Of a stretch of 64,000 bases of DNA, positions 26,428 through 47,017 are shown in pieces. The stretch covers positions 1,240,001 through 1,304,000 of the forward strand of contig JBLDXI010000020.1 in NCBI GenBank assembly GCA_047495785.1, given 5' to 3'. A model generated the notes under the pieces. That model made no database searches. It worked only from the letters and a program-made list of their open reading frames with translations, and was not told the DNA's origin. The DNA comes from Lepidodermella squamata (lineage: Eukaryota > Animalia > Gastrotricha). How positions within the stretch are numbered: the stretch's first letter is position 1; every line of letters begins with the position of its first letter. The position numbers were made by a program, and so were the translations under genes.

Positions 26428-26833
26428 TCTGCAATGTCCAGTTCAACTCCCTCAAATTGTAATGGTCCTATTATTTAATTTACATTATTATTATGCGGCG
26501 AAAATGACAGAGGAGAGATAAAGTTCGATAGAGATAACACTGGCCCAGGGATATTATAAGATTATGACAGCTTCTTGAAGTTACGCTCTACTACAAGTAC
26601 ATCGATCACAAACACGACTGCACAGATGAGATTAGTAGAGATAAAAAATCATCTGATCTGATGTTGGGATAAACAAAAAGTGCATTTGTATATGATTTCG
26701 GACTTTCAAGTGGTCATTCCACCGCGAGTTCGTGCCTCATGCATGCGGAAATTCACTAAACTCCCATCTTCACTCAACCAAACAAAACATCCCTGTTGCA
26801 TTTGCTAGGCTTTTAGTTTTATATCAAATAGCC

Positions 26834-27097
26834 ATGCTACACAATTATTTGTGGTTCATTGCATCTATTATGCTCTGGATCTCCGCTGCTACCGATGCAT
26901 ATTCATCGCGTAATTACCAACCAAGCTCGAACAATGTCCAAAGCGGTTACATCCCGCCTTGGTGGCGGACCAAAAAGTCGTCCGATGATAATCAAGGTGA
27001 GTCGGCGTTCTCACAACGTTTTCGCTTATCGAAACCAGCCGAAGCCTTACGACGGCCAATTTCCTTTGGTCAATCAAGAGGCGTGATGTACGGATGA
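26834..27097 (+). CDS. Secreted prepropeptide 1 (87 aa); predicted PISFGQSRGVMY-amide
   Basis: Signal peptide MLHNYLWFIASIMLWISAATDA, KK and RR sites, terminal Gly then TGA. Confidence 0.85.
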   Translation: MLHNYLWFIASIMLWISAATDAYSSRNYQPSSNNVQSGYIPPWWRTKKSSDDNQGESAFSQRFRLSKPAEALRRPISFGQSRGVMYG

Positions 27098-27856
27098 TGA
27101 TGATGAAGTTGGGACATCAAACGTGACCATTCCATCTGTCTCCTATGATCTTCAGCATCTTCAAATTTTGTTATCGCCACAAGTTCGAACTCAAAAGCCA
27201 CTTAAAATTCTCGAACTGTTCGATAAATTTTACTTAAATTTATAAAGTGTGAAATTATTGTTTGATGTTGTGATCGCCTTCCAGCCAATAATACGAGACG
27301 CACCCAGAGAAAAGTACTAAATTATTTTACCAAATAAAAAATGGTTCCGCGTAAGTGATCACGCACTGTTGCTTCTTTTCAGAAAAACCAAAAATTCAAT
27401 TTGGGAAGTGTGAAATTGATTAGGAATCAACTGGTTCAACGTCCTCGAAATATGATGGCTGAAGAGCAGCTATTTAATTCACATTATTTTGTTTTACGGC
27501 GAAAATGGCAGATGAGAGATGATTGAGTTCGATTGAGATAGCAGAGATAACGCTCGCTCGCCCACGGTTAAGATTATGACAACTTCTTGAAGTTACGCTC
27601 TTCTACAAGCGCATCAATCACAAAGATGACTGGGCAGATTAGATTAGTAGAGATTAAAAAAATCATGTGATCTGGTGTTGGGGTAAACAAGAAGTGCATT
27701 TGTATGAGCCCGGACACTTTAAGTGGCGATTCCACCGTGTTAGTGCCTCATATTATACGCATGCGAAAATTCATAAAACTACGTGGTCCTATCTTCACTC
27801 AACCGAATAAAACTCCCGTGTTGCCTTTGCTAGGCGCTTAGTTTTAGCAAATAGTC

Positions 27857-28219
27857 ATGCTCCAAAATTATTTCTGGTTCATTGCATCTATAATGCTCTT
27901 GGTCTCCGTTGCCACCGATGCATATTCGTCAAATGATTATCAGCCAATCTCGATCAGTGCCAGGGGTAGCAAGGGACGCACTCCGGCCTGGTGGCGGGAA
28001 AAAAAGTCGTTCGATGAAAATCGAGGTGAAAATCAACCAAGCTCAAGCAATGCTCGGGGTAGCAAGGGACACACTCCGCCCTGGTGGCGGGAGAAAAAGT
28101 CATCCGATGAAAATCAAGGCGAATCGACGTTCTCACAACGTTTTCGCATGTCGAAACCAGCCGAAGCTTTCCGACGGCCGATTTCCTTTGGTCAATCAAG
28201 AGGCATGATATACGGATGA
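27857..28219 (+). CDS. Secreted prepropeptide 2 (120 aa); predicted PISFGQSRGMIY-amide; carries a 93-bp internal duplication
   Basis: Paralog of gene 1 with a signal peptide and RR-peptide-G-stop end. Confidence 0.85.
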   Translation: MLQNYFWFIASIMLLVSVATDAYSSNDYQPISISARGSKGRTPAWWREKKSFDENRGENQPSSSNARGSKGHTPPWWREKKSSDENQGESTFSQRFRMSKPAEAFRRPISFGQSRGMIYG

Positions 28220-28908
28220 TGACGCTAGGCCATCAAATATGACCATCCACTCTGTTTCATATAATGATCTTCAGCATAATCAATCTTGAAGTTGTTGTTA
28301 TCGCCTCAACTTTGAACTAAAAAAAGCCACTTGAAACTGAAGCCATTTTCGAACTTTTTTTCGAAAAATTTGACGTATACCTTTAATTTATACCTTTTCG
28401 TGAAATTGTGTATGATGTTGTATCGTGTGCCAGCCGATTATACGACATACGACCCCGAGAAAAAGTACCAAATTATATAATGAAACCAAATAAAAAAGGG
28501 ATTCTACGTAATAGGGATCACACACTTTTGCTTTTTCAGAAAAACCAAAAATTCAACTTTGAACCTTTTCCTGGAGTTCTTCTCAAATATAGGAAGTATT
28601 AGGAATCAAATATTTCATATGTTCGAATTATAATGGCTGAAGAACTATTTTTAATTTACATTTATTTTGGCTTGCGGCTAAAATGACAAATGAAAGATGA
28701 TAAAAGTTCGATAGAGATAACGCTGGCCCAAGGTTATCCTAATTATGACCACTTTGTAGTTGCGCTCTTTTATGAGCTTATCGATCATAAACATGGCTAC
28801 ACGTGTCAGTCGTTATTACAAATCAATTTGATGTTAGGAATAAACAAAAATTGCATTCGTATGATCTTGGACTCTAAGTGGACAGTCTTTATTTTATCGG
28901 CTATAGCA

Positions 28909-29187
28909 ATGCTCCAAAATTATTTCTGGCTCATTGCAGCTTTTATGCTCCTGATTTCTGCTGCCACTGATGCATATTCATTATCTGATTACCAACCAAG
29001 CTCAAACAACGTCCAGAGTAACAACAACAGGTACATTCCGCCTTGGTGGCGGACCAAAAAAGCCGCCGATGAAGAACACGGTGAATCGATGTCCTTACAA
29101 CGCATGCACTTCTTGAAGCCAGCCGAAGCCTTACGACGCAAAATTGCCTACGGTCAAACAAGAGGCATGCTTTACGGCAGACGCTAG
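28909..29187 (+). CDS. Secreted prepropeptide 3 (92 aa); predicted (K)IAYGQTRGMLY-amide
   Basis: Signal peptide MLQNYFWLIAAFMLLISAATDA; RRK...YGRR-stop. The true ATG is 28909 by alignment to genes 1 and 2. Confidence 0.88.
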   Translation: MLQNYFWLIAAFMLLISAATDAYSLSDYQPSSNNVQSNNNRYIPPWWRTKKAADEEHGESMSLQRMHFLKPAEALRRKIAYGQTRGMLYGRR

Positions 29188-30103
29188 GACATCAGACATA
29201 TTATTATCCGATGATTCACACGATCTCAAGTTGATGTTGTCGTCACGAGTTCGAGCTCAATAGCCACTTGAAACTGAAGCCAGTCACGACCAGTTCGAAA
29301 TATTTGACTCACCTGTAATTTGCATGTTATTTAAACGTGTGCCGGCCACATTATTATATAAACAGGAAGTATGAAATTGATTAGCAATCAACAAGCGTCA
29401 CCTTATCGAAATGTTATTTTCATCGTTATCGTGTCGAGTTTTTCGCAATAAATAACTCAATAATCTTGCCAACATTTACCGTTATTTTTCCTCAGGGATT
29501 TGGCTATTAGTTTTTTTATCCTGAGTTCTTAAAAAACAGGACGGCAGATGTTTTAGGGCAGTTCCTGATTGGTACTTTGAGAATTTTTCGAAAAAATGCT
29601 GGCTATAAATTGTTAAGAAATGTCTCATTCTTATAGGTGGGCATCGCAGACTATCACGCAAATGTGTTTTCGATGATTTTTCATTTAGGTGCTGCGTGAT
29701 TGCAAACAGCCCACGCGTTTTTGTAGTATTAATTCCCTTGGCATAGGCCTGGTCCCCACTTCACCAAATGGCTGATGCTGCGGAGTGACAGCCAACAATA
29801 ATAACAAAATTTGACCGAACGTCAGAATCAATTCTCTGGAAATTGAAGTGGCTAGCCCACATGCTTGTTTATATCCAATGCCCACAGTATATATACGCCA
29901 AGGCAAGGAGCTCGTCAATGTGAATTACGAACATGCCGTAATATCATGTCATTACATTGTCCAGTTTTTCGCCTCGTCGCCTCCAGCTTCCGGCCCGATT
30001 CGGACAATAATCATTTTTATCAATTTTCGTAGACAGAAAGCCGGCCTAAAATTGTTTCTTCAATTTTGATACATATAGGCTTTCAAAGTATAAAATTTTA
30101 CCC

Positions 30104-30334
30104 ATGGCTAACAAATCTGCTCTGAGTTGGAAAGTTGCTGTTTATTGGCTGGTTGTTATCGCTGTTTTCGCTCTATTGGCGCCTGGTATATCCGCTGGTG
30201 ATGAAGACGAAGACTCGAACTCGGAGGAAACTGGCCGGCATTACGTTTTCATCCCCATGTCAGCATACTCTCGCCGGCTCTTCAAGCGTGTCAATGGTCC
30301 CCAAGCGTCCGGAATTATGTTTGGCCGTCGTTAG
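30104..30334 (+). CDS. Secreted prepropeptide 4 (76 aa); predicted VNGPQASGIMF-amide
   Basis: Hydrophobic signal, acidic spacer, KR-VNGPQASGIMF-GRR-stop. Confidence 0.88.
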   Translation: MANKSALSWKVAVYWLVVIAVFALLAPGISAGDEDEDSNSEETGRHYVFIPMSAYSRRLFKRVNGPQASGIMFGRR

Positions 30335-30723
30335 TGATCTCGTCGAATCATGCCATAATAGATCTCAGAGTTTAAACGCCTTATTTGTGAACACATTTTT
30401 TGATGTTTCTTTTAATTTTAAAATTTAATGGCTAGCCTTAGCAATACTTATACCTGTCAAAATTGTTCGTTCTAACTAAGTTAGGGATACCATAGTATAT
30501 TTGCATATTGAAAAAATAAAACATCGGATCAATTTTTCTTTGCAATCGTTATGGTTTTATCAATGAACTGGTTAATGTGACGCTGTAATGGGAGAAGAGC
30601 GCGTGCCTCTCATTTTCAAGAATCAAGTTTTTTTCAATGCATTTTTCTGTTAAAATTCGAGCAAAAAGAAGCTTCGAGAATCTCAACTAAAATTTCATAT
30701 TCTCCTTATTAGGCAAATTATTA

Positions 30724-30927
30724 ATGAAAAGCTCCTGTTGGAAGTTGTGGACAATCAGCCTCTGGTTATTACTAATTTTGTTGCTGATAACGGTTTCTTA
30801 CGGCGATACTACAACCGAACAAATTATTGGGACGAATGAAGCGGAAAAGTTGACAAGCGAGACTCCTGATTCAAAGGCGAATCCCACCAAACGCGCACCT
30901 CTCTCCGGAATAATGTTTGGCCGCTGA
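30724..30927 (+). CDS. Secreted prepropeptide 5 (67 aa); predicted APLSGIMF-amide
   Basis: Signal peptide, KR-APLSGIMF-GR-stop. Confidence 0.88.
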   Translation: MKSSCWKLWTISLWLLLILLLITVSYGDTTTEQIIGTNEAEKLTSETPDSKANPTKRAPLSGIMFGR

Positions 30928-31488
30928 TCAATAGAATCATTTATATATAACTTATAAATAATATCAAAAGTCATCACCGAATATTTTTACTTAACAAAAG
31001 TTGTGCCCGAATAAAAGCCTTGCATTTATTGGTATAAATTGAGTTCGATTTCGAAGGTTCCAGAAAGCGGGCGAATTAATTTGGTACATCTGGACTGATT
31101 TTCAAGAGGCGGATAAACATGTCTCGCCGTGAATAAGTGGCTAATAATTGACATATTATTCGCCGACCCACGCGGATAAATCAGGCGTGAAGCGTAGCCA
31201 CCGGCACTGTGGGGGCACTTAACAAATCAATCAAAAAATGGCCGCAAGTGTCCATTTTTAGCCGCAAAAAACATCAGCGAGGTCAGTCATATTTATACGA
31301 ACACTTAAATTGCGTTCGCATCATTTTTCCGAATTCTTTTGTCAAGAGGAAGTGAATTATTACAGCCCCCACGCTTGCCAGAAGATCCCAGAAAAATTTC
31401 TTCAATAGCTCCAAATAATGTTTTGTTAATCGCGAAATTAATTGTTTCGAATAGGAGCCTTTAGAACATTTTCAATTTCAAACCAGAA

Positions 31489-31650
31489 ATGTCTGCCTTC
31501 CAATACTTTCTTCCTCTCTTCTTGTTGGTCTGCCTGGCAGTGATCAACATGGCAATTGCCGATGAAGAGTTGGACTTCGACGGCGAAGACAAATATGACG
31601 TCTATCCTATCAAGTCATTCGCCAAGCGAGTTCGCATCTTCCGAGGATGA
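31489..31650 (+). CDS. Secreted prepropeptide 6 (53 aa, absent from the ORF track); predicted VRIFR-amide
   Basis: Manual translation: MSAFQYFLPLFLLVCLAVINMAIA-DEELDFDGEDKYDVYPIKSFA-KR-VRIFR-G-stop. AATAAA at ~31749. Confidence 0.8.
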   Translation: MSAFQYFLPLFLLVCLAVINMAIADEELDFDGEDKYDVYPIKSFAKRVRIFRG

Positions 31651-32019
31651 TACTCTCAATGTTCATCACAGTATTCAACTCAATTCATTTCAGTCAGGAA
31701 CCTATTTTTTTGCATGCATTTACCACCTAAAATATTCCTAATATCGCAAATAAAATTACAATTGTTTGTGTTCAAGTTTGGTTATATGTAAACATCGATG
31801 GAGAGACGCTGAGTAGTACGAGACCAATCAATGATAAAAAGATAACCAACGATGTGCCGGCTATAGCTGAGGCCAACTGAGACACCCTCTGGTCACAAAC
31901 TCATGTTGTTATTCTGCGGTCCACTGATGAAAAATTTCGCGTAGGCAAGAGCCGGTTACTTTTTAAGGGCGGCAAAAATAAAGCAACCGGCAAGAACTCA
32001 AGTTCATACTCGCTTAAAA

Positions 32020-32286
32020 ATGGTTTCATTCAAAACAACGCGCTACGTAATACCGACGATATTGGTCATAGCCTTCATTGCGAACTTTCTGGTGGAACCG
32101 ATTCACAGTCAAGGTGTCGGCCACCGCGAGGATTGGTCGATATTGCCATTGCTGAAATTTTACGCAAATTCAAAACGCAGCAATCCGTCTGATTCCGCGT
32201 CGAAAGGCGGCTATCTGTACCTCAGTAATGGCAATCGAAACAGGCATTTTTATGGCCAAGCTGGTGGCATTCTGTACGGACGTTAG
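32020..32286 (+). CDS. Secreted prepropeptide 7 (88 aa); predicted HFYGQAGGILY-amide
   Basis: Signal peptide, KR site, RNR-HFYGQAGGILY-GR-stop. Confidence 0.85.
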   Translation: MVSFKTTRYVIPTILVIAFIANFLVEPIHSQGVGHREDWSILPLLKFYANSKRSNPSDSASKGGYLYLSNGNRNRHFYGQAGGILYGR

Positions 32287-32667
32287 ATAACATTTCATAA
32301 TATTATGAATTTTTAGCTGTTTTGAAATAAAATTTGTTGTTTTTTTGAGCAATTTTTCGCACGTAAAAGTGTTCGAAATCGTGCCAGGATTTTTTGCTTC
32401 GATCAATAAATGATTTCATTTGACCACTTCATGTGTCAATGGAGAGACGTCAACATCATCTGGAGGCTAAATAACTGACAAGTGCACATGACCAATCCAA
32501 TGGCCATCAGCCTGGATCTTCGATTTTCTGTAGCCAAAGACGTAACAATTTTTTGTATCGCGAGCCAGTCTATTTTTGTACCATTATTCAAACCAATTGA
32601 CAAGTTAATTATTATACACAAAACTTTTCTGTTCTCAAGACGGTTTGATCATTGTTACTCAAGAAAA

Positions 32668-32967
32668 ATGTATCTCATACTCTTGATACCTATTTTATCG
32701 GCGATTTTGGTACTACCAGCATCTCGAGGCGATCAAATCTTGGATAATTTTGTCAACGAAAACGAAGACGAGATTTTTCTAGCTCCGCTAAGCTATTTCA
32801 GCCAGCGCGAGCCGTCGGATTGGCCCACCCACGCGGTTGTAGTCGCTAAAAAATCTGCGAATTTTGCCGACAATGAAGAAGCCGAATTTGAGCTGATGCG
32901 GCGAATGATAGCGCATGGCAGTCAAACACGGAGCCTACCGTTTTATGGCCGCCGGCGCAGGCGATAA
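32668..32967 (+). CDS. Secreted prepropeptide 8 (99 aa); predicted MIAHGSQTRSLPFY-amide
   Basis: Signal peptide MYLILLIPILSAILVLPASRG, acidic spacer, KK, RR-...FY-GRRRRR-stop. Confidence 0.82.
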   Translation: MYLILLIPILSAILVLPASRGDQILDNFVNENEDEIFLAPLSYFSQREPSDWPTHAVVVAKKSANFADNEEAEFELMRRMIAHGSQTRSLPFYGRRRRR

Positions 32968-33284
32968 ACAGTTCAGAAAATTATATCACCTAAATCTCTC
33001 TGTTGTCTTGTACCAATATCGAGTAAGCAGCCTATTTCGGTAACCGATAAATAAATCAAAATTTTAGCGTTGTTAAACTGAAGTGTTGGTGTTGTTGTTT
33101 GAAAAAAGGAAAATGGCACAGAATCGCTACTGTGAACCAGGTCCAGGTTGATTGATTCCCATTTCTGGTAGGTGAGAAACTTCTCTTCTCGACGGACAAT
33201 TTTACGATCCGGTTTATACAATAGTTTTTCCTACCTCGGATATTCTGCCAACCATCAGCAGTTGTTTAGCACTATAGAAGTCCG

Positions 33285-33488
33285 ATGCATGACGCTTTTG
33301 CTCTGATGAGCAAGCTTTACGATTCTGACGAGCAACAGAAAAGCGCAGAAATAAAAAAAAAGTCCGCGAAATTCACACGCCCGGCTTGGGAAACCGACTT
33401 GGAGCGGGAACTTCAAAGACAAAAGGAAGTTCGTGGACACGTTATATTATATCCTGCTTTTGATAATAGCGAGTTGCCTCCACCGTAG
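33285..33488 (+). CDS. Possible small charged protein (67 aa), function unknown
   Basis: ATG just after an AG acceptor-like site, coding-like composition and AATAAA just downstream. No recognisable domain. Confidence 0.35.
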   Translation: MHDAFALMSKLYDSDEQQKSAEIKKKSAKFTRPAWETDLERELQRQKEVRGHVILYPAFDNSELPPP

Positions 33489-33631
33489 CTGGCACATTCA
33501 AAAAAATAAAGCATTATGTTAATTGGCTCATGTAAGTAATTGTTTCGAGTATTCTCACGTTAATTACTGCCGAAAATTAATGGCTGACAAGTTGTACACT
33601 CATTCATGCGTTTAATTATAATTAATGAAAA

Positions 33632-33973
33632 ATGGGGAATTTCCCTACAACTGACGACCCTACCAATGTTTCGGCTTATATTAATATAATTTTCGGCATT
33701 TTATCAATTTTCGGGATAGTTGCTGTCATTGTAGCAATGGCTATTCATTTTTCCCCCGACAGATTAGTCACTCAGCCTATGGAGACAACAACAACGGAGG
33801 ATCCAATCAAAACCCTACCGACTACGACAGTCTTCAGCTGGCCACCACCGGAGAAACCTGACTCAGACACTCCTCCACCCTATTTCCTTGCCGTCACATC
33901 ACCGGCCCCGCGACAGGATGTCAACTATATGCCGCGGAACCTAGGACGATGGCCGTCCGTGTTCCCATCTTGA
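33632..33973 (+). CDS. Small single-pass membrane protein A with a Thr/Pro-rich tail
   Basis: MGNFPTTDDPTNVSAYI + TM + IHFSP; clear paralog of 34261-34674. Confidence 0.75.
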   Translation: MGNFPTTDDPTNVSAYINIIFGILSIFGIVAVIVAMAIHFSPDRLVTQPMETTTTEDPIKTLPTTTVFSWPPPEKPDSDTPPPYFLAVTSPAPRQDVNYMPRNLGRWPSVFPS

Positions 33974-34260
33974 CCACAGCGCTGCCTGAAACGCTGAATT
34001 TGCATCAAAATTAATTCCGACTGTTTCAACTATTTTAACGAAATTAATTCTTTTGTTTGCAATAAAGTTAATAGGATTAATTTTTGCTTTGTTTTTTATA
34101 CAAAAAAGTTTTGAAATCCCTTCGCGTATGACCCGCTTTTTACATTGTGATTGTCAAGTGTTTAGACCATTGTCCCGGATTGAGATGAATACGACGGTAT
34201 GAAAAATTTCAAGGCTAGACATTTGCCATCATTTTGTCTCATGAAAATTGAACAGCTGCG

Positions 34261-34674
34261 ATGGGAGCTTTTCCGACATCGAATGACGCGACAAACATTG
34301 CGGCATATATCGCCATCGTTATCGGCATTTTATGTATCATCGGCATCATTGTAGTTTGTGTAGCGGTCGGAATTCACACATCACCCGAGTATCTCAATAG
34401 TACATCTACAACAGAAGGGACAACCACGGCGGCGCCAACAACTCACGCACCAGCGCCAGTAGCAGCTACTACGACGGCAGGTCGACGTGCGAAAAAAGTC
34501 GAAAAAATTCGCCTTCCCAGCTTTCTATTCAAAATTGGGGACGACGAATGGGCTGCAATCGGAGTTTCAGAAGACAGTATGCCGGGAGAAGAATTTTTCG
34601 AGTCTTCAAATTCTACTGCAAACGGAACCGTCGTAGTCCTGGACGATGACAGCAGTTATGAATACTACGACTAG
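34261..34674 (+). CDS. Small single-pass membrane protein B with a Thr-rich stalk
   Basis: MGAFPTSNDATNIAAYI + TM + IHTSP; paralog of 33632-33973. Confidence 0.75.
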   Translation: MGAFPTSNDATNIAAYIAIVIGILCIIGIIVVCVAVGIHTSPEYLNSTSTTEGTTTAAPTTHAPAPVAATTTAGRRAKKVEKIRLPSFLFKIGDDEWAAIGVSEDSMPGEEFFESSNSTANGTVVVLDDDSSYEYYD

Positions 34675-34700
34675 CTTTTGAATATATAGGTATTATGAAT

Positions 34701-35005
34701 CAGAATATTATCTTTTACCGGAACCAAATTTACGGGGTGCGGAACCTAATTTGCATGTCGCGGAACCAAACTCAAAATATGTAAAGAGTCACATTTCGAA
34801 TAATTTTTGGAATTTGAGGCAAAGCATGATTTCAGAATTTTACGCTGAATTCAATGACTAATTATTCAGAATTATAATATTGGTCAGCCATGGTACCCTT
34901 GTAAGTTCCGAAAATTGGTTTTAGCCCCATTAAAAATCCATTTGGTCCGTTAAATAATAGTTGGTTCCGCTCACCGTAAACTTGGTTCCAGTAAAAGGAG
35001 GACTC
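34701..35005. mobile_element. MITE-like element with ~36-bp imperfect TIRs (GGAACC sub-repeats)
   Basis: cttttaccggaaccaaatttacggggtgcggaacc (34712) against ggttccgctcaccgtaaacttggttccagtaaaag (to 34997). 9-bp direct repeat attatgaat at 34692-34700 and 35006-35014. Confidence 0.7.
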
Positions 35006-35096
35006 ATTATGAATAAAAGTCTGATTTAATAATTTAGTTGGTTGGTTTTCCAATTTAATAGGCTAATCAGTTGAATCGTTATACTGTGCCTCCTTT

Positions 35097-35289
35097 GGCA
35101 GACATAACAGCAAACAGCAAACAGACATAACGTCATAACAGCAAATACCCAAAACAGCAAACGCGACAAATCAGCAAATTTTTCAACTTGCGACTTAACA
35201 GCAGAAATACGATGCATCTTTTACATAATAAGTTTTCGCTGTTTTGTCGCATTCGATGTTCTGCGAAGTTGCTGTTTTGTCGCCGTACC
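35097..35289. mobile_element. MITE-like element with AACAGCA sub-repeats
   Basis: Left ggcagacataacagcaa against right ttgctgttttgtcgcc. 8-bp direct repeat cctccttt at 35089-35096 and 35290-35297. Confidence 0.55.
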
Positions 35290-36054
35290 CCTCCTTTTTG
35301 TTACCTGGACCGTTTTCTATACAAGCGTATTTCCGCCTCTCAGCACCATTGGCTCCTTAAAAGTCTCAAAAAAACGCAGAAAATCACTCAATTATTTCTC
35401 CATTCAATCTCAAAAGTCGTTTGGTTCTATTTTTTTCTCTTTTTTATTTACTAAGAAATGACAGCTTAATGCACGAATTAATATGGAAACGCCAAATATT
35501 TTGCAACGCAAATAATGTTCCTGATTGTTCACTCACTTTTCAAGCGAAATACCGGACTCAGTGTTAACCACGTTTCAATCATAAGGGTAAAAACCTTGCA
35601 GCTCAATTACGATTACTAAGAGGCAAGAAAATATATTTCAATCTTTCTTCGCCGATATTTCGAGGACATACATATGTTGTGTCGAGAGGAAATATGTATT
35701 AAGGTCAGACCTCAATGCTTTATCGCAATAAAATCATTTGCGTTAAGCTACTTGAATATGGCGTCATTTTTTGAAAAATAGATCTCGTGGATATTATGCT
35801 AGTTAAACACAAAAAATATTGTTTGATTAAGGCTTCCATCTAGTAGCAGACCATTTTCAGCAGGCAGTTGGTGCGACAAGTGATGACTGGTGTAGCGATT
35901 ATACGGATAATGATCTCAAGGTGCATGGGCACGCATACAAAATGAATATATAACGAAAGAAAACAATCAACGGTGTTTATACGAGGGCGGATCAAAAAAA
36001 AACAATCTTAGTCCTTGGGTTCGCTGATGACAAAGGGCCATCCCTTCAGCCATT

Positions 36055-37787
36055 CTAATGCTCGTTCAGGCAGGTCGTGCGAACGATCATCTCCGTGACC
36101 GAGTACGGGTCGCAGTTGCTGGCCGGGCGACGGTCTTCGAGGTAGCCATAGCCGTCATGGAAGGTTTGGCGAGGAACGCGAACCGAGCTGCCGCGGTTGG
36201 CGACGCCCCACGAGAATTTGCCGATGTGAGCCGTTTCGTGGTGGCCGGTCAGACGACGCTTGTTGTCCTCGCCGCCCTTCGCGTCGTACTTGACGATGTG
36301 CTCCATGTGACGCTTCTCCAACTTGGCAATGGCTTCTTCGATTGCCCTGAAAAAAGATGCAAAAAATTAAAAAAAAAATACGAAAAATATGAACTTAAAA
36401 ATTCTTTTGGTGTAACAGTAAACCCGAATTTCAAAAACTCGACCAAAAGTCACCAAAATCGAATATTATCGGGAAATCAAGGAAAAACCGGGTGCCTGAT
36501 GGAATTTCTGAGAGATTCTGATCATTGCTCATTTCGAAAAGTAATAAGGATCCTATGCCTACTTTACCTACATACTTGTGAGAAAATAGCATAGAAAGTT
36601 GAAATAAAAAATTCCATCTTAAAAAATTGCACAGAGCCATAGAAAAATTCGAAACTGGGAATTAAAATCGAATTCTTGTTCCTTTAAAACTCAAAAATGA
36701 AACTCTTCAACTAGAAAATTCGATTGATGTAACGAGTTAAGAAAATATATGAATTTTTCTTCCAAAGTTTAGAAATTCTCCATCAAAATAGCTCAAAAAT
36801 GACGAAAGCTCTCCTGCAATTGCTCCCGATTTTTTAAAAGCTCGAACATCCCAGAATCAATGAATTTCAACTCAAGCATTAAATAAGACAAATTTAAAGG
36901 AATTAAGGAAAATTACTTGTAGCCAATGCCAGGGGTGCGCATGGCGACCGTGGAATAGTTGCAGTGAGCACCAGCGCCGTTCCAGTCACCGGGGATCGGC
37001 TTGCAATCGTAGGTGATGACGACGCCGAAGTCTTCAGCGATGCGGTCGAGCAGGTAGCGGGCAACCCACAGCTGGTCGCCCATTTCAATGCCCTCGCACG
37101 GGCCGACCTGGAACTCCCATTGAGCGGGCATCACCTCCGAGTTGGTGCCGGCGATCTTGATGTTGGCGAAGAGGCACGCCTTGAAGTGCGCCTCCATGAT
37201 GTCGCGGCCGAAGGTCTTGCCGGCGCCAACCGCGCAGTAGTAGGGTCCCTGCGGGCCTGGGTAGCCGTTCTTCGGCCAGCCGAGGGGATGCTTGTCCACG
37301 TCGAGCATCGTGTACTCCTGCTCGATACCGAACCACGGCACTTGATCCTTGGCAGCATCCATCGCCTCCTTGCACGATTTGCGATGGTTAGTGCCTAGGA
37401 AAATCGACAAAAAAATTCAAAATGAATCACGAAAGCAAATTTTTCCAACTTACTGACTGGCTTTCCTTCGAAGTCGTAGACATCACACAGAACGATCTTG
37501 TTATTGCCGCGGAGGAATGGATCGGGGTACATAGCTACCGGGTACATATAGGTGTCGCTGTTGTGACCCGACGCCTGGCCAGTCGAGGAGCCGTCGAAAT
37601 TCCACACCGGCAGTTCGGAGACCGCCTTGGGCTCGGCATCGAGGGCACGCGACTTGCCGCGAACCGCCTCGCCAGTGCCGTCGATCCAGATGTAGGTGGC
37701 AATGGACTTGCCCCGCTGGTCGAGCTCCATGTAGTGGTTGTAGACCGCCTTGTTCAGGGTCTGATGCGGACCAAGCATGGCTGACAT
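36055..37787 (-). CDS. GLUL: Glutamine synthetase (GSII); exons 37454-37787, 36917-37394, 36055-36346
   Basis: 'YIWIDGTGE', '[11 protein letters not shown]', 'PWFGIEQEY', '[17 protein letters not shown]', '[18 protein letters not shown]', 'RLTGHHETA', '[14 protein letters not shown]'. Confidence 0.98.
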
Positions 37788-40700
37788 CGCAGTAACAACG
37801 TAACAAAACTACTTATTAAATAAAATCAAAACAAATCACCATAAAAATTGACAGTAAGGCTTTTGACGAGCTACTTAAATAGCAGGCCTAGTGGGACGGT
37901 GCGGCCACACCCCTGGCGTTAGGCGTGCCAAGAGGCGCGTCAACAGCCACGTGGAAACATTGCATAACAACGTAGCAGTTTTTATGTTGGTCAGAGGAAA
38001 TTTAACCTACTAATGCGAAATAGCGGACTGGCCTTATGCCAACCCAATTATCGCCGCGATTTTCAGGCCAAATCGTCATATAAAAAATAGAGAAGCGCAG
38101 CATCTAATCAACACGCACGTGCTACTAATAAGCGGCTGACCCGGGTCAAACACCATAAATAGAAATTGCTAGGTCACTCGTCCGTTCATATTCACATAAA
38201 AGGAACGCGCGCAAGGCAAGAACACTAGATTACTGCCTGGTCGCTATTATTTGAAGCTATACATTCAGAAATCGAATTTAAAACACGTGCCCAAGTCTCT
38301 CAGGGAATTCAATGCGAATTTTCTTTCAAGAAAACACCGCAGAAATTCTCCCATCAAATTATTTCCATCCTATTCTCAGCAGAAAAATAGACAAGTGCTT
38401 CTAGTTATATTATCGATAGCATGGTTCGAAAACTACCGGGTATATTTTCTAACTAGTTTGTCCCTACCAATTCGAGCGTGACTGGTGTGGCATCTAAACA
38501 GCGGATAATTTATAGCCTGAGAATATAGGGTTGAACTGAAAAATAAAAATTAGCAAGGGGCGCATTATCAGCAGTCTGGAATTGGTTTTTTTCATACTCG
38601 CTATAGATGCCAACTACGCATTAGATAAGCCTTTTTGAAAAATGTAGTGCGGTGTATTTTATAGCACGTACCAAAAAACACGGTGTGGCAGGTTATGCGT
38701 ATTTCTTGCATTTGCACAGCTCGGCGCAAATGCCTGTAATAAATTGTCATTACCGTTTTTTTCTTGGCGCACGTGAATTTTCTCGCAAAAAAAACGAACT
38801 ATATAGGTGCGTCGAGCGATAAAAAACCACACGCCAGGCAAGCGGTGCAGAAAAAAAACAACCCCAGCTACGAGGGATCAGCGTTGTCGGACGCGCTCGT
38901 ATATGGTAGGTAATTGGAACAATGTATAATATACGAGAGAAACGCATGATGAAAAGCCGATCCTAGCTCTCGTGGTAGCGCCCGCGAGCTAATGAAAACA
39001 ATAATAATACGAAACAAGGTTTTCCACTGATCGTGGAAATAATAATGCGCACATTATACACCGCTCGATGAATATTCTATTTACGCCACCACTGCAAGCT
39101 GCAGTGAAGGGGAAAACGCTACGTTCCAAAAAGCAGCGTAGAATTGTGTTGGCCTGGGTCAATGTGTACACTTGTAAGAGCAGATCGAGGGACACAAGAA
39201 AACGCTGCCAGCTCACAAATTGCTGATTTTAATTATTTACATGTGCACGCACAGTGTCAAATATTTTTCTTCACGGGTGGGTGCTACTGGTAAAAAGAAA
39301 ACCACTGAATAATAAAAGAAAGAAAATCTCACCCACCAGCTCTCACCCAATAGAATCACTCGAAACATCGGATTGAGAATAAGGTTTCTGTTTCGCACAT
39401 GGGGTTCGCCTTATTATGTGCTGCTCTTTCACATAATACGTAGAAAATGAGGGAGTTTCAGCAAAAACATCAATGCAAATCAGATCACTTGAATTTTCAA
39501 ATTTTCCATTTCCCATCGAGACTTTTCAATTGCAGCAAGGAGTTACAGTTCTCAAGTTTGAAATAGGTTCCTAAACGGATGAAAACTTTGATTAGGCCAA
39601 GGCCCGAAGTAACAGCAAAAGTTCTGCTGTTACGTTACCACCATAGCGTCTTGCATTTAATTCAGACGCCTTTAAAACGGTTTGAGTCAAAATTGGCTGT
39701 CATACCTATCAGCCGATATTTTATCCCATCATAATAATACCTTTTTTATACTCACAAAATGAAGCTAGAAGACGCTCAGGTCCAGCTACTCACCAAGACA
39801 CTGTTCAATTTTTGTCAGTTATGATCGAGATGGGATGACAGCGTTCCGGCAACTGCTTATCACCAGACCTGCGGACCGCAGTCACGACGCTGGCTAAGGT
39901 CTCTGATGACGAAGGGGACCTAGAACAGGAATATTAAGGCAGCATTCAACGTCGCTTATCTGCGAGGATTTTTCGAGGATTTAATTCTGCAAAACGGGTG
40001 CAAAAGCATCGCTGCCAGCAGATTTCTTGTTTGAAAGCTGTTTCGAGTTTTAAATTAGATGCAGCAGAATGGAAATGACAAAGCAACATAAGGTACCATC
40101 ACCTCCATAGCTGGTTATTTTTTTATGTCAAGAGGACACGCACATATTCATCCCGTAAATCCAAAGTTGAATGGCTCGCATGAATGAATAGTCATAATTT
40201 TAAAGTGTATCCAAACACCAGGGCAGAATAATCACTTAGAAAACTGGCTTAGAATTTGAAAGCTTTAACAACATAACCATAAGATCAGCGTACAAAGTGG
40301 CAAGTGGCTAGTCTGACGTCTGACTAGCATCCATGAGGACTGTACTGGCTGCAAGCTCTTCTCCTGAACGCCCGAAAGGGCGCCGGGAGAAATTCAACAT
40401 AGCAGCCGCTCGCACTTTAGAGTAAATAAACTGACTCAACTACCGCCTCCATACGTTTTGAACCTCGGATCTCAAAGAATCAAATTCAAATCTTCGGCAA
40501 AGAAAAGCCAATCGAAGGCGAGTCGAAGAAAATATTAGACAATCGGAAATACCGTAAAGGTAGATTGTTTACTGTCGCTGGTTCGTTAGTAAGAATTCTA
40601 AGAGGATCGTGACTAGTGATTCCTGTACAGAAATAAGTAAGTGGTTTGCCAAGAAGAGAAATGTAAGTTTTGTAACGGAGCTGAAGAAAATTCTATTGGT

Positions 40701-41728
40701 AAGAAGTTTTAATGATGTGGATCTGAGATCAAAGGTTAGAGCTTCGAAACGTTTTGCAATACCAAACTCTGAAGTTCTATGGCTTCTGGATGCTATAGTT
40801 GGAATGAGTACGCCAGAAGAGAGTGCAAATAAAGAATTTAATTCATCTCTAACCAGTGGGTTTTTACACTGTGTCAGGTCGCAAACGAAAAGGACTGAAT
40901 ACAACTTGGCTATAATATGAAATGCTAGGTGGTAGAATGCGAACAGCTTTGAGAGTTTAGAGTTTTGAAACAGAGAATGGCACTGACTGAACGGTACTGA
41001 ATGGTATGTAGTATGTCCACAATTGACTCAGCCAACTCACAATGAACCATAACGAAACTTTCCTAATGTTCATATTTAGCGCGCTTTATTTGTCAAGGTC
41101 GGAATTTTAAAAAATTTCAGGAATTGGTCAAAAACATTTTTAAAATCAACATATTCTAATTTGATCTTATTATAAATTTAACTTACGTCAATGTCGATTA
41201 AAGCTATAATATAATTCATTTTTTTTATAATAATAAATCGTTTCCGATCTCATTTTAGGTGTTAGTTTCCCTCAACCCGTTTTATCCTATTTCATCATTT
41301 TCTTGTTTTATTGTTAAATTTGCTGCCACGTATCGAACTGCTTTTGCGACGTGTCATCCAGCTTTGTGGCTGATTTTGTTGTACATAATCAGAAATAAGA
41401 CCTCAGTCGAAGAAAACCGCCAAAGAATCCGGAATCCGCGATCGATCCCTAACACTTAACATCTGGATTTTAAATCCTATGGTTTCACTGGGCTTTCTTT
41501 ATCAGACATTTCATCTCGTTAAATATGATTGGTATTCAATTATATCTCAAACTCCGGCTTTCATGAGTTATGGATTCCAAGTTTTAATCGCTATGAATTT
41601 CCTCTCATTTCTCATTTCCTTTGGGACTTCGTAGGATTTTGAGGCTTTCGACTGAGTGACTTACCAGTATTATACCTATATAGGTAGTGGAAGATAAAAA
41701 TTCTGATTATTTATGTGTGCATATTAGA

Positions 41729-42064
41729 ATGTTTTTATTCGGTCGATCTAAGAAGAAAGAAGCCAACGAGACAGGCCAGGTTGTTGCCGGTTCTAAATCT
41801 GCGGAAAACTTTGTTCTTGTCGGGGCTAGCGAGTCTCATACATCAAGCAATCCTCAAGCCAATGACGTCATGGTATCCAGCAAAAACGTATTTAAACCCG
41901 TGAACCCTCTCGATGGTATCCCACTGACCGTTCAACTCACTGATAGCGGAAATCTCCGTAGCATTGGTCCTGCAGATTCACTAATTTTGCCTTACTCTTG
42001 CGATTGGAACTCTCTTACATACGAGTTCCAGTTAGAGCATCGTGTCTTACGTGATTTCCGATGA
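41729..42064 (+). CDS. UMAD1: UMA-domain ESCRT-I subunit (UMAD1-like), 111 aa
   Basis: N-terminal 'MFLFG..KK', 'NFVLVG', 'LDGIPLTV' and C-terminal 'YEFQLEHRVL' match the UMAD1 layout (GFVLLG, DVPFTL, YDFTLENSVL). Confidence 0.75.
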   Translation: MFLFGRSKKKEANETGQVVAGSKSAENFVLVGASESHTSSNPQANDVMVSSKNVFKPVNPLDGIPLTVQLTDSGNLRSIGPADSLILPYSCDWNSLTYEFQLEHRVLRDFR

Positions 42065-42188
42065 TCTATTAGTTAGCAGTGATATTATTTATATTTCGCT
42101 CCCTTTCGTTATTGACGACTTGGAATATGTCTTAATCGATTAAATATTGATGCCTTGTGATTTTTTGCATGATTTAGACGATTAAATA

Positions 42189-43430
42189 ATGGACAGCCAG
42201 GGCAATAAGGTCATTGTCTGTGACAACGGTTCTGGGGTAAGCTGAATTGTTTCTTAAGTTAGACTTCAAGGTCCTAGTTTTTATTTTTGTTAGTTTATGA
42301 AATGCGGATACGCCGGGTCGAACTTTCCGGAATTCGTAATTCCCAGTGTTATTGGTCGTCCAGTTCTGCGATATAAAGCTAAGCTTAGCGACGAAACGGA
42401 ACTAAAAGACATCATGGTCGGAGCCGAGGCTACACAACATCGCCACTTGCTTGAGTGCATTTACCCCATCGAAAATGGCATTGTCCGCGAATGGGATGAC
42501 ATGCAACTGCTATGGGATCAAGGATTTTCGAAAGAATTCTTGGACGTCGACCCTAAAAACGCCAAAATTTTGCTGACAGAACCGCCGATGAACCCGGGCA
42601 AAAATCGGGAGCGAATGCTTGAAGTAATGTTCGAGAAATACGGTTTTAAGGAAGTTTACATAGGCACACAAGCCGCATTGGCCTTGTATTCCGAGGGTCT
42701 CGTAACCGGAGTTATGGTGGATTCCGGCGATGGTGTAACCCACATTTGCCCTGTTTATGAAGGGTTCGCCTTGCCTCACCTTACACGTCGCCTGGATATT
42801 GCTGGTCGTGATATCACGCGTTATTTAATCAAACTGTTGTTAGCTCGCGGTTACGCCTTGAATCATTCCGCGGATTTCGAAACCGTACGGACGATGAAAG
42901 AAAAACTGTGCTACGTTGCGTTTGACATTGGCGCTGAAACCGATCTGGCGCAACAAACGACGGTTTTATCCGCAACTTATACATTGCCCGATGGCAGGAC
43001 GTTGCGACTAGGTGCTGAGCGATTCCAGGCTCCGGAAGTGCTATTCCAACCCCATTTAATGGGCTGTGAGACGCAAGGACTTGCCGAATTGCTATTCGGC
43101 ACTATTCAAGCGGCTGATCTTGACTTGCGGCCCGAGTTCTACCGCCACGTGCTGTTATCTGGCGGTTCAACTATGTACCCTGGTCTTCCATCGCGTTTGG
43201 AACGCGAAATGAGTCAATTGTACCTGGAGCGGGTTTTGAAGGGTGACAAGGAGAAGCTGTCGAAATTCAAGCTGAGGATCCAGGACCCGCCTCGCCGTAA
43301 GCACATGGTCTTCACCGGCGGTGCTTTGCTGGCTAATTTGATGAAGGACCGACCTGCTTTCTGGGTTTCTAAAGCCGACTGGGCGGAGAAGGGCCCGAAG
43401 GTTGTTGAGAAGTTCGGCGTCAAGTTGTAA
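42189..43430 (+). CDS. ACTR2: Actin-related protein 2; exons 42189-42236 and 42294-43430
   Basis: [28 protein letters not shown], '[22 protein letters not shown]', '[12 protein letters not shown]'. Confidence 0.97.
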
Positions 43431-43783
43431 ACGAGAATTGATTTTACTGCTTCTTGAATTCGCTTATTCTATGTAGAAATGATCGACCATCGCCTTGAAA
43501 AGAGCATTTGCTTTCATTATATGTATTATTGTAATCGCGCTCTAATCTATTGTAAAAAAAAATGATATGCTGCTGTTGTCCCGAAGGAGGCGAATTTTCT
43601 ACAATTATTTCTGCCATGTCCATTACCATTATATTACCATATCGATTGCTTTGTCAATACGCTGAAAGTGCAAATTTCAAAGAAAAATAGACGCTTGTCG
43701 AAAAACGATTTTTCAATAACAATGAACAACTGTGACATGTTATATTTTTTTCAAATTTTTTTAGGTGGATTATTATTGATTGA

Positions 43784-45294
43784 ATGGATTGGTGGACGGC
43801 GTGGTCCAATCCAGACGTTGCCGCCTTCGCCGGCGAAAATGGCAGCAGCAGGATGTCGCCTTTTGCGCTGTCGTCTGTTGCTATCGTAATTTTGTCTGGT
43901 CTCGCTTACAAAGTCACTTACCGCCTGATTCCTCTGCTAACCGATCTATTTGTTAATGCCGGCCGGTTCGGCTACGATTTGTCGAAAAAGACAAGATATA
44001 AAGTGTTAGTTGATGGATGATCGATAATTTCTTTTTGAAATTTTTTTATGACTTTCCAGACCCGAAAGTATGGGCATTGTATGCGGAACGATTTATCTCA
44101 TTGCTATGTTCTTGTTCATTCCGTTCCCGTTTGTCGACTACTTTGTCGGCGAGACGAAGCAGTTTGCTTACAGCAGAGTAAGAATAATTCTTAGAAAAAA
44201 ATATCATCTACCTTAATAATTTTTGTATTTAGTTTGTCGATTATTTATCAGGCCTTCTGTCTGTTTGCTGCATGTTGCTGCTCGGTTTCGCCGATGATGT
44301 TCTTGATTTGAGGTGGAGACACAAGCTAATGCTGCCAACCTTGGCCTCACTTCCGCTTTTGATGACTTACTTCGTCAACTCGAATATGACCGTAGTCGTC
44401 ATGCCTGCTTTTATTCGTGCAATCACCGGAAAATTTGTCGATATTGGTAGGTTAAATCGACTATTTGAATAATTCGCAAAAAAATTTCAATTATTTTCAG
44501 GTATTCTTTATTACCTATACATGTGTATGTTGGCTGTATTCTGCACCAATGCGATCAATATTTTGGCCGGGGTTAATGGTATCGAATGCGGGCAAAGTGT
44601 TGTCATAGCAATCAGTATTGCTGTTTTCAACTGCTTCGAATTAACCGGAGCTTACTTCAGAAATCACCTGTTTTCTCTTGGCCTGATTCTACCTTATATT
44701 GCCGTCTCATTCGCTCTTTTACGTCATAACTGGTTTGTTTTAAAATATCCAGCTTAATTTTATTTGAATATTTCGATTTTTCTTAGGTACCCATCTAAGG
44801 TGTTTGTTGGTGATACTTTTTGCTATTTCTCTGGCATGATTTTCGCCGTTTCGGCAATTTTGGGCCATTTTTCGAAGACGCTGTTGCTGTTTTTCATTCC
44901 GCAAATTTTCAATTTCATCTTCTCGTGCCCGCAGTTGTTTCACCTGCTACCGTGCCCGCGTCATCGGATGCCGAAATTCGACCCCGAGGCCGATAAATTG
45001 CAGGCGTCTACATTTATTGTGAAGCCTGACGCTCTATCGACTTTGCCTCGATTGATTCTTCGAATCGCAACACTGCTCGGGTTGGTTCGAGTAACCCCGA
45101 CTGTGAAAGACGGCGATGATAAAAACTGGGTTGAAGTGACAAATTTCACTATTATCAACTTGGTGCTAAAGTTGTTCGGGCCGATGCATGAGAGAAATGT
45201 GACGACGTTGCTGTTGATACTGCAAGCTATTTGTTCAGTGATCGCATTCGTAATTCGGTACCCACTTGCCAATATGCTGTACACGCCTCAGTGA
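43784..45294 (+). CDS. DPAGT1: UDP-GlcNAc:dolichyl-phosphate GlcNAc-1-P transferase; exons 43784-44004, 44060-44177, 44233-44446, 44501-44732, 44787-45294
   Basis: 'PESMG', 'GFADDVLDLRWRHK', 'FCTNAINILAGVNGIE', 'YPSKVFVGDTFCYF', 'PCPRHRMP'. Confidence 0.97.
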
Positions 45295-46050
45295 AAATTC
45301 GTGGTCGTAACATGATCGATACCCTGAAGTTTCCTGATTACGAAAAATCGAATGAAAAATATGTGCATCTACTTGTGAAGACTTATATTATCATTATATT
45401 GCTGAATTCGGTTGATCGGTGATTTCTTTTTCTTTTTGATAAATATAAATAAATAATATAATGTGCTTCTCGAGTTGCATCACTACGAGGCAAATCTCAC
45501 TTCTAACACTCACACTTTCCGTTTTTGAGCTGCTGTCAATGATTTTTTCGAAAATGAAAATAAAATTGAAATATCAAGCTGTTTTCACCGTGCATTTTTC
45601 GAAAATTTCAAGGTGCACAGGTTTTTTCGATTTTCGCAGATATCAGATACTAACCAGCGTTACCAGCCGGCTGCCGGTCTAATCTCAGAAAAGCTCGCGG
45701 GAAATCGAAGAGAGGCATCGCGGCATCCAGCTTCGAAGCAGAAACGATGCGATACGAATGAAACGAATATTGACCAATGCAATAGCCATCATCCTCGATC
45801 TTCGAATTTTGTAGTATGGTGCGCCGAAATCGTTCACACAATTGTTCTCTAGACGAACACATATTCAGTGTATTCAATTTTTCAATAATCCTAAATGTGC
45901 CGCACGGACTTCGATAGGACACAGATCGATAGCCCTTAATTATAGCAATCGATTGATAATATAATGATACATAGTTACTCTCCCGGTTCGGCCATTATTT
46001 TGGTGAAATATAGGTAATTCTCATACCCTAAAGGCTCAAATCCCTTATAG

Positions 46051-46349
46051 GCGTACAATATCATACTGCTGCTTATTTTTCGACGATCTTGGTACTATCA
46101 GCATCTCGAGGCGACCCAATCTTGGATAACTACGTCAACGAAAACGAAGACGAGGTCTCTAGTTCCATTATAAGCTATTTCAGCAAACACGAGCCGTCAA
46201 GCTGGCCCACCCACGCGGTTGTAGTCGCTAAAAAATCTGCGACTTCAGCAGACAATGAAGAAGCCGAGGATGAGCTGATGATAGCGAATGGCAGATGGCA
46301 GTCAAACCGCCGACCGCCGACGCAGGCAATAGACAGTTCAGAAAATTAA
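46051..46349 (+). pseudogene. Degenerate copy of prepropeptide 8
   Basis: Near-identical propeptide (ILDNYVNENEDE..WPTHAVVVAKKSA..DNEEAE). The ATG position is GCG, the RR site is deleted, and indels destroy the FY-GRRRRR end. Confidence 0.75.
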
Positions 46350-46744
46350 ATCACTCAAACTATATGCTGTATTGCACTATTATGGAATAAATTTGCGGTA
46401 AACAATAAATAAATGACAATTTTGGCGTTGCTAAATTGCTGCGTGTTTGATGTCGGGTAAACAAAAGAAAGAGACAAGGCCGGAGCAATCATCTATGAAC
46501 TGGAACACTAAATGAGAACGCACTATTGCGCAAAATCCTCAACTCAAGCCGCGAGTAAGTGGCATATTTCCACCAATTTTAAAGACTCCTACGCCCAGGT
46601 CTAGTCCACTATCTCAAAACACATCACAAGAGAAGAAATTCGTCATATTTCAAGCCTGCAAAGGTGATGCGACCCTTTTTCATTGCAACTTTCCTGAATT
46701 TTGACAGGTCTTAAAAATTAGTTAGTAGCTCAGCCGATCTGCCA

Positions 46745-47017
46745 ATGAGGTTAACATTCGTCCACCTCTTCATTTTCGGCCTGCTGTGGTCATTGGCTCA
46801 ACCGACTGGTGTCGCAAATCTGACAACTCAGTCTGATTACTTCACTGCTTCGACCTTGACAGCTCTTCACCAACCTACAGCTAGACCACGCAGGTTGGGC
46901 AGGGCAAAAATGTTGCCGGAGAACTACACGAAAAATGCAGCAGCGAATTGGCCGGAACTGGTTCAGCGCATAATTTACGGTCAGGCCAGAGGAATGATTC
47001 TATACGGACGTCGATGA
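46745..47017 (+). CDS. Secreted prepropeptide 9 (90 aa); predicted IIYGQARGMILY-amide
   Basis: Signal peptide MRLTFVHLFIFGLLWSLA; R-IIYGQARGMILY-GRR-stop; AATAAA at ~47050. Confidence 0.87.
   Translation: MRLTFVHLFIFGLLWSLAQPTGVANLTTQSDYFTASTLTALHQPTARPRRLGRAKMLPENYTKNAAANWPELVQRIIYGQARGMILYGRR

Follow-up and report, generated by a model that had tools for sequence, protein, structure and literature searches.

The window analysed here, a stretch of 64,000 nucleotides from the gastrotrich Lepidodermella squamata (contig JBLDXI010000020.1; GC content about 43%), contains nine small genes, g1 to g9, that appear to encode secreted precursors of C-terminally amidated peptides. A first-pass annotation, made from the sequence alone, had described them as nine intron-free open reading frames (ORFs) on the + strand with defined C-termini, and all nine are present where it placed them. 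Genes g1 to g8 follow one another head to tail at intervals of 370-920 nt, and the genes neighbouring the cluster are metazoan. The earlier count of about nine genes overlooked a tenth family copy, a broken paralogue of g8 that adjoins g9 upstream, 13.4 kb from the cluster. Runs over the locus date from 2024, 2015 and 2014. X1 is a DNA run that covers everything, while X2 and X3 (2014 and 2015) were classed as RNA by their behaviour rather than by their records: their contigs lie on ORFs and untranslated regions and largely skip the spacers. Coverage was compared over a 6,000-letter stretch that extends from g1, minus its first 136 nt, through g8, with g9 lying outside. The genes are as follows.

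g1, 26834-27097, + strand: precursor of 87 amino acids (aa), with signal peptide, PPWWRT-KK segment, spacer, RR, predicted PISFGQSRGVMY-amide (27056-27091) and terminal Gly; 3' half covered in X2.
g2, 27857-28219, + strand: precursor of 120 aa, a tandem duplicate of g1; predicted PISFGQSRGMIY-amide (28178-28213); X2 contig at 27867-28498 and pieces in X3.
g3, 28909-29187, + strand: precursor of 92 aa; predicted IAYGQTRGMLY-amide (29143-29175), then GRR; X3 contig at 28732-29164 and pieces in X2.
g4, 30104-30334, + strand: precursor of 76 aa; acidic spacer, KR, predicted VNGPQASGIMF-amide (30290-30322), GRR; the best SIFamide/FFamide-like member.
g5, 30724-30927, + strand: precursor of 67 aa; KR, predicted APLSGIMF-amide (30895-30918), GR; X2 cover at low depth.
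g6, 31489-31650, + strand: precursor of 53 aa; acidic spacer like those of g4 and g8; predicted VRIFR-amide (31630-31644), unless KR stays uncut, which would leave a longer cationic peptide; X2 and X3 cover.
g7, 32020-32286, + strand: precursor of 88 aa; predicted HFYGQAGGILY-amide (32245-32277), preceded by a single Arg (RNR), with cleavage at the KR of residues 52-53 giving a longer alternative.
g8, 32668-32967, + strand: precursor of 99 aa, starting at the ATG at 32668; predicted MIAHGSQTRSLPFY-amide (32905-32946), then GRRRRR; X2 cover at low depth.
Broken g8 paralogue, about 46050-46349, + strand: no in-frame ATG, a 1-nt deletion in the signal-peptide part, peptide part shifted out of frame with some of its letters lost, and the amidation Gly missing.
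g9, 46745-47017, + strand: precursor of 90 aa; predicted IIYGQARGMILY-amide (46970-47005), preceded by a single Arg, with cleavage at the RR of residues 49-50 giving a longer alternative.

All nine precursors have a signal-peptide-like start. By a hydropathy heuristic, which was the basis of the signal peptide calls, each contains a single hydrophobic stretch at its N-terminal end (Kyte-Doolittle mean of the best 10 residues, 2.1-3.5) and is otherwise hydrophilic, and no cysteine occurs outside the signal peptides. At the other end, the predicted peptide is followed in every ORF by Gly and then by basic residues or the stop. A strict filter combining a signal-like start with a G[KR]* end returned 6 ORFs in 26701-33100, compared with 0.05 on average and never more than 2 in 300 dinucleotide shuffles, and two ORFs over the remaining window; g1 and g6 narrowly miss its cut-offs. 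Signal-like starts and C-terminal Gly ends are thus well above the shuffled level, in support of the original description of secreted precursor genes with an amidation signal. The C-terminal motif G-[VMIL]-[MIL]-L?-[YF]-G was found in seven of the nine ORFs, the same count as first reported, with one further chance occurrence on the minus strand. Trailing R or RR after the Gly, ascribed to most of the genes, is present in six, and g1, g2 and g6 end in a bare Gly. The monoisotopic MH+ values calculated for the predicted amides are 1340.68 (g1), 1354.69 (g2), 1271.66 (g3), 1119.56 (g4), 834.45 (g5), 689.46 (g6), 1224.62 (g7), 1606.82 (g8) and 1396.78 (g9).

The exact mature peptides that had been proposed stand in part: the amidated C-termini can be predicted securely, but the N-terminal cuts are doubtful in g1, g2, g7 and g9. 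The convertase site ahead of the peptide is a clean dibasic pair in g3, g4, g5, g6 and g8, RR followed by Pro in g1 and g2, and a single Arg in g7 and g9. Pro directly after RR disfavours convertase cleavage, and given the RR-Pro and single-Arg sites, longer mature products are likely from these genes. The idea of a single peptide per precursor is overstated, since g1-g3 contain a conserved PPWWR(T/E)-KK segment and an upstream dibasic site is also present in g7, g8 and g9. From its position, the KK after the tryptophan pair in g1-g3 may free a second, non-amidated peptide. This would be doubled in g2, where an internal in-frame 93-nt duplication (27934-28119) produces two P(A/P)WWRE-KK segments.

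Growth of the family by gene duplication, as first suggested, is borne out by g1-g3 and by the broken g8 copy. The former are three duplicated units of about 1.05 kb, flanks included, with 75-83% identity across the ORF and 68-80% across the flanks. Their pairwise ratios of nonsynonymous to synonymous substitution rates (dN/dS) are 0.29, 0.39 and 0.40, and all indels within the ORFs are multiples of three. Thus, g1-g3 are under purifying selection. The broken copy is 87-89% identical to g8, and its variant end is also present in X1 (loose end at 32898). Of the four strain differences listed for g4, three are synonymous and one changes E to D. Wide divergence of the propeptides, also part of the original description, holds across the whole set but not within g1-g3, given their ORF identity. 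The accompanying contrast, of a C-terminal motif that holds while the propeptides diverge, finds no support in g1-g3, where conservation of the mature peptide does not exceed that of the spacer (dN/dS of 0.88 between g1 and g3, over 13 codons). The best-kept parts of these three precursors are KPAEA(L/F)RR and PPWWR(T/E)KK, and not the predicted 11-12-mer, which comprises few codons.

The genes are real, and transcription is seen for at least seven of them. RNA-type cover was found for g1-g6 and g8, seven of the eight genes in the compared stretch, and g7 had zero depth in both X2 and X3. The deepest contigs in both runs lie on g4, though contig depth is unsuited to ranking the genes by expression. 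Two features of transcript structure could be placed.

g4 leader acceptor AG/G, 30078-30079, + strand: identical foreign letters before the AG (30077-30078) in X2 and X3.
g6 mRNA 3' end, AATAAA at 31749 and poly(A) addition site at 31770, + strand: 22-A loose end in X2, the tail beginning 21 nt past AATAAA.

The leader junction sits 25 nt upstream of the g4 start. The leader letters match nowhere in the window, even with 3 mismatches allowed, and no cis donor of the form GT[AG]AG occurs in 29188-30078. Because the leader is absent from the window and no upstream cis donor is present, the junction is probably a spliced-leader trans-splice site. Similar AG/G sites lie 12-38 nt ahead of the starts of g1, g2, g5, g6 and g9. 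A search for a common upstream motif of the cluster genes returned nothing beyond AT-rich words.

As the first-pass annotation had supposed, no described relatives of these precursors emerged from any of our sequence searches. Neither the nine-sequence alignment nor g4 gave homologues in a word-index search, and a full HMMER scan of 1.84 billion representatives and an exact look-up were likewise blank; since such searches detect only proteins of similar length and have little power for short, rapidly evolving precursors, their blanks do not amount to proof of absence. Pfam, NCBIfam and PDB yielded no homologue either. Motif words were absent from the parts available of the supplements to two lophotrochozoan neuropeptide surveys, and no neuropeptide description for L. 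squamata was found in the literature searched. A search for a syntenic cluster that started from the neighbouring GNAT gene yielded 38 distant loci, matching in part at 31-60% identity, and neither a precursor nor synteny was seen among them. In the nearest relative found, represented by loci L001-L004 and with an Arp2 protein 92% identical, the order glutamine synthetase, Arp2, glycosyltransferase gene is kept; no precursor gene was present within the compared stretch of these loci, nor any counterpart of g9 beside the shared flanking gene. By language-model features, g3 and g4 group with single-peptide amidated prohormones (DH31, PDF, NPF, NPFF, PrRP, gastrin) at scores of 0.83-0.92, with no family favoured.

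The first-pass annotation had likened the peptides to the SIFamide family, and this is supported for the SGIMF ends of g4 and g5. Lepidopteran IMFamide is NYKNAPMNGIMFamide (PMC4926255) and arose by duplication of SIFamide (PMC4926255; 10.1101/2020.09.17.302331), and the spiralian forms in the supplement to PMC8557429 and in PMC4200219 end in P-x-x-[NS]-[SN]-L-[FL]-F-amide. The ends of g4 and g5, P-x-x-S-G-I-M-F-amide and A-P-x-S-G-I-M-F-amide, resemble both IMFamide (APMNGIMF) and this spiralian pattern, and six of the eight terminal residues of the g5 peptide are identical to IMFamide. On a SIFamide/FFamide profile built from 15 octamers and compared with 14 unrelated control peptides, g4 scored 15.3 (the members' minimum is 13.4; p 0.0004, or 0.0016 with spiralian members alone). 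For g5, p was 0.0003 with IMFamide included and 0.0095 without it (range 0.0003-0.036). The other seven cluster peptides do not fit the profile (p 0.07-0.68), and the 14 controls were also below the members' level (best p 0.017). With the number of comparisons taken into account, the agreement of g4 and g5 with the family pattern P-x-x-[NS]-[GSN]-x-hydrophobic-F-amide is no more than suggestive.

SIFamide-family precursors are likewise short, with one or two amidated peptides, and duplication with C-terminal drift is known in that family, as in IMFamide and SMYamide (10.1101/2020.09.17.302331). However, as had been pointed out for arthropods, the layout is different. In the arthropod, mollusc, annelid and nemertean SIFamide/FFamide precursors compared, the peptide or peptides directly follow the signal peptide and precede a tail, usually with two cysteines, whereas the cluster precursors have a spacer of about 23-85 residues ahead of the peptide, which comes last, and their ORFs stop after G(R)n with no cysteine tail. 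We did not file g4 and g5 as SIFamide members, because the cysteine-pair tail is missing and their action on an NPFF/SIFamide-type GPCR would be conjectural. The likeliest seed of the cluster would nevertheless be a SIFamide/FFamide-type gene whose cysteine tail was lost, g4 and g5 having stayed nearest the ancestral peptide; we regard this origin as possible though somewhat doubtful. It is more speculative, and in our view unlikely, that the cluster is the gastrotrich SIFamide locus itself. In that case the cysteine tail would have been lost, the peptide moved to the C-terminus, and the locus diversified into about nine genes, each for a single ligand, that carry a new G-Q-x-R-G-x-x-Y-amide motif, perhaps along with a matching radiation of receptors or a change to signalling from one individual to another. 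If true, this would be one instance of a genome-wide tendency to assemble peptide repertoires from gene arrays and not from repeats within a precursor. No report of a nine-gene cluster in the SIFamide family was found in the literature searched.

Several other peptide systems share features with the cluster. The flatworm NPP-27/1020HH peptides, VPPYITGGIRY and QSYLTGGIRY, have Y...GGI-x-Y in common with g7 (4 of 10 positions identical; p 0.02 uncorrected, a weak likeness), and the Schistosoma npp-27 precursor has the same layout, with signal peptide, long spacer, KR, one C-terminal peptide and no tail; unlike the peptides here, they are not amidated. If NPP-27 is a flatworm SIFamide homologue, as we presume, this tail-less precursor favours a changed layout in the lineage. 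NLP-10 of C. elegans ends in GGMY-amide, like the G-M-x-Y-amide ends here, and comes from one gene with several peptide copies per precursor and no known cluster. It is also called SIFP-1 and is an established ligand of a SIFamide-type receptor (PMC11004728).

DH31 and PDF precursors, the top language-model matches, have the same layout of signal, spacer, basic site and one C-terminal amidated peptide, but differ in having no Pfam or sequence match to the cluster and in shared feature counts under the level typical of family members. Mature DH31 has 31 residues and PDF 18, with other C-termini. Membership of the DH31, PDF or NPF families found no support in Pfam at expectation values (E) up to 1, and feature matches were spread over many hormone families. 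A DH31 origin, raised by an FGxSRG likeness, was rejected, since neither length nor C-terminus nor Pfam gave a match.

A precedent for the type of locus is provided by the Planarins of Schmidtea mediterranea (spp-6, -7, -8, -9 and -17), in the sister phylum of the gastrotrichs (PMC11660948). These too are lineage-specific small prohormone genes multiplied by duplication; some of them are genomically linked, and they are expressed within the nervous system and close to it (PMC2953531). They differ in showing no evident sequence similarity to the cluster, in yielding two non-amidated peptides per precursor, and in the opposite orientation of spp-6 and spp-7. By eye, Planarin-type peptides (GFGFNRN, LIDPMTFG) were not found in the nine precursors. 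Thus, of the 'undescribed signalling system' first proposed, the sequences are undescribed in the literature searched, but the type of locus is known.

Whether the nine genes form one family was judged from local alignments against shuffles, with p values uncorrected. Genes g1, g2, g3, g7, g8 and g9 are tied through the C-terminal peptide (g3-g7, g3-g8, g3-g9 and g8-g9 each p 0.0005), and g4 is linked to g3, g5, g7 and g9 (p 0.0015-0.013; g4-g5 0.0015, g3-g4 0.003, g4-g7 0.0045), with the consensus x-G-Q-[AST]-[RGS]-G-hydrophobic-hydrophobic-[YF]-amide. On this sequence evidence we assign eight peptides to one family, linked through g4, and leave out VRIFR-amide of g6, which had been counted with the rest and matches no other peptide of the cluster. 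The acidic spacer of g6 resembles those of g4 (p about 0.006) and g8 (p about 0.02). Because the g6 'peptide' aligns with the basic stretch preceding the g4 peptide, g6 may have arisen as a truncated paralogue and acquired a different amidated end. Alternatively, the cluster could mix two or three unrelated families, namely SGIMF-amide (g4 and g5), GQxRG-Y-amide (g1-3 and g7-9) and g6, with only the generic prohormone layout in common; the SIFamide likeness would then be limited to g4 and g5 or be convergent. This would account for the failure of spacers of different groups to align, save weakly g4-g6-g8, for the unmatched g6 peptide, and for the scores of g1-3 and g7-9 on the SIFamide profile (p 0.07-0.5). 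Yet g4 bridges the groups, with Q-A-S-G-I-M-F against Q-A-G-G-I-L-Y in g7 and the p values given above for g3-g4 and g4-g7, and all the genes are adjacent, co-oriented and intron-free. We hold a mixed cluster to be rather improbable, and it would be compatible with either of the signalling roles weighed below.

We consider it fairly probable that the cluster is a lineage-specific prohormone gene family whose secreted, processed and amidated peptides act on G-protein-coupled receptors (GPCRs) inside the animal. Precursor anatomy above chance, RNA-type cover, dN/dS below 1, related peptides and the Planarin precedent all support this. Local tandem duplication would have expanded the family, and each gene would give a short mRNA, at least that of g4 receiving a trans-spliced leader. 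Following established knowledge of the pathway, the signal peptide would direct the precursor into secretion, prohormone convertases would cut at the basic sites, a carboxypeptidase would trim the trailing Arg, and PAM would convert the terminal Gly to an amide. The product would putatively signal through a rhodopsin-type GPCR in the nervous or endocrine system; this receptor class and site of action, like a SIFamide origin, are conjectural. A number of points weigh against a prohormone family of this kind. No database searched yielded a homologue, within the limited power of such searches for short precursors, g7 has no RNA-type cover, and the convertase sites in g1, g2, g7 and g9 depart from the canonical form. 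That the mature peptide of g1-3 is conserved no more than the spacer is a trait also seen in fast-evolving exocrine peptides. The SIFamide match concerns a short hydrophobic C-terminus, for which some 500 implicit comparisons would give an estimated 0.2-0.8 chance matches of this strength; the best single match in that family is a derived moth paralogue, and g4 also matches molluscan LASGLVamide at four of seven positions, shifted by one. The peptides, their site of expression and their receptor are predictions.

The main rival keeps the same processing but has the peptides released outside, as a pheromone, a reproductive peptide or an epidermal or adhesive-gland secretion, to act on conspecifics or other organisms, and the cluster would diversify in the manner of exocrine peptide loci. 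Quick gene turnover, with three recent duplicates and one broken copy, would fit such a role, as would the lack of special conservation of the g1-3 mature peptides and the absence of any homologue even in the related animal with the 92% identical Arp2, where g9 has no counterpart beside the same flanking gene. On the other hand, nothing places the transcripts in glands, the peptides look like ordinary GPCR-ligand amides, and the Planarins set a precedent for a neural role of such expansions (PMC2953531); we consider release to the outside unlikely, if worth taking seriously. A host-defence (antimicrobial) role is much less probable. Its products would be cationic amides freed from acidic pro-regions, among them the Trp/Arg-rich PPWWR segments and, for g6, a 17-residue cationic C-terminus left uncut. 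It is suggested by a net charge of +2 to +6 in the last 19 residues before trimming, and by a weak, below-cut-off match of g6 to the signal/pro region of a frog-skin peptide (E 0.046). However, the predicted mature peptides carry only +1 to +3, their hydrophobic moment is not above shuffles (p 0.27-0.90), and the shared trait is the C-terminal motif and not charge. Whole-genome amplification might have created the duplicates as assembly artefacts, or the ORFs might be dead, but either reading is barely credible. Multiple displacement amplification, a source of chimeras, was used for the probable source genome (PMC11660948), and one copy is broken, but the copies differ by 12-30% and not by about 0, X1 covers the whole compared stretch, the 2014 and 2015 RNA-type runs contain the genes, and dN/dS is below 1. 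Copy divergence, run coverage and dN/dS together rule out an amplification artefact.

In any case, the locus supplies concrete, synthesizable candidate ligands from the phylum sister to flatworms. If g4 and g5 are SIFamide orthologues, it would show a change of layout of a conserved precursor in the gastrotrich-flatworm lineage, with one ligand gene seeding a new peptide family. If they are not, it would be one more lineage-specific prohormone family, useful for annotation and without a new mechanism.

Several other features of the window were recorded. Upstream of the cluster, a GNAT acetyltransferase exon at 25990-26427 (- strand) is transcribed away from g1, 407 nt from the g1 start, and the g1-3 repeat unit reaches almost to the GNAT start. 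Just downstream, at 33632-33973 and 34261-34674 (+ strand), is a pair of intron-free ORFs, paralogous to each other with 58% identity across their first 45 aa; each encodes a single hydrophobic segment at the N-terminus and a mucin-like tail rich in Thr and Pro, and neither falls in a Pfam family. An intron-free, divergent Arp2 gene lies at 42297-43430 (+ strand), its product about 70% identical to named animal Arp2 and 92% identical to an ENA metagenome protein. Around the Arp2 block the related animal has several tandem glutamine synthetase genes (L001 6455-12923; L002 4671-5405), compared with one in the window (about 36050-37790). Such genes also occupy the position held here by the broken g8 copy and g9, and this pair looks like a lineage-specific insertion here or a loss in the related animal. 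Farther away, a palindromic element at 6780-7092, with 83-nt arms that are 95% complementary and internal repeats of 32-47 nt, looks like a miniature inverted-repeat transposable element or a fold-back element. A repetitive acidic ORF of 550 codons at 12705-14357 (- strand) is extremely Glu-rich, with no family assigned. Finally, a C-type lectin domain encoded at 62082-62624 (+ strand) is followed by a Gly/Met/Pro-rich tail that ends in FGR and a stop, a possible amidation signal.

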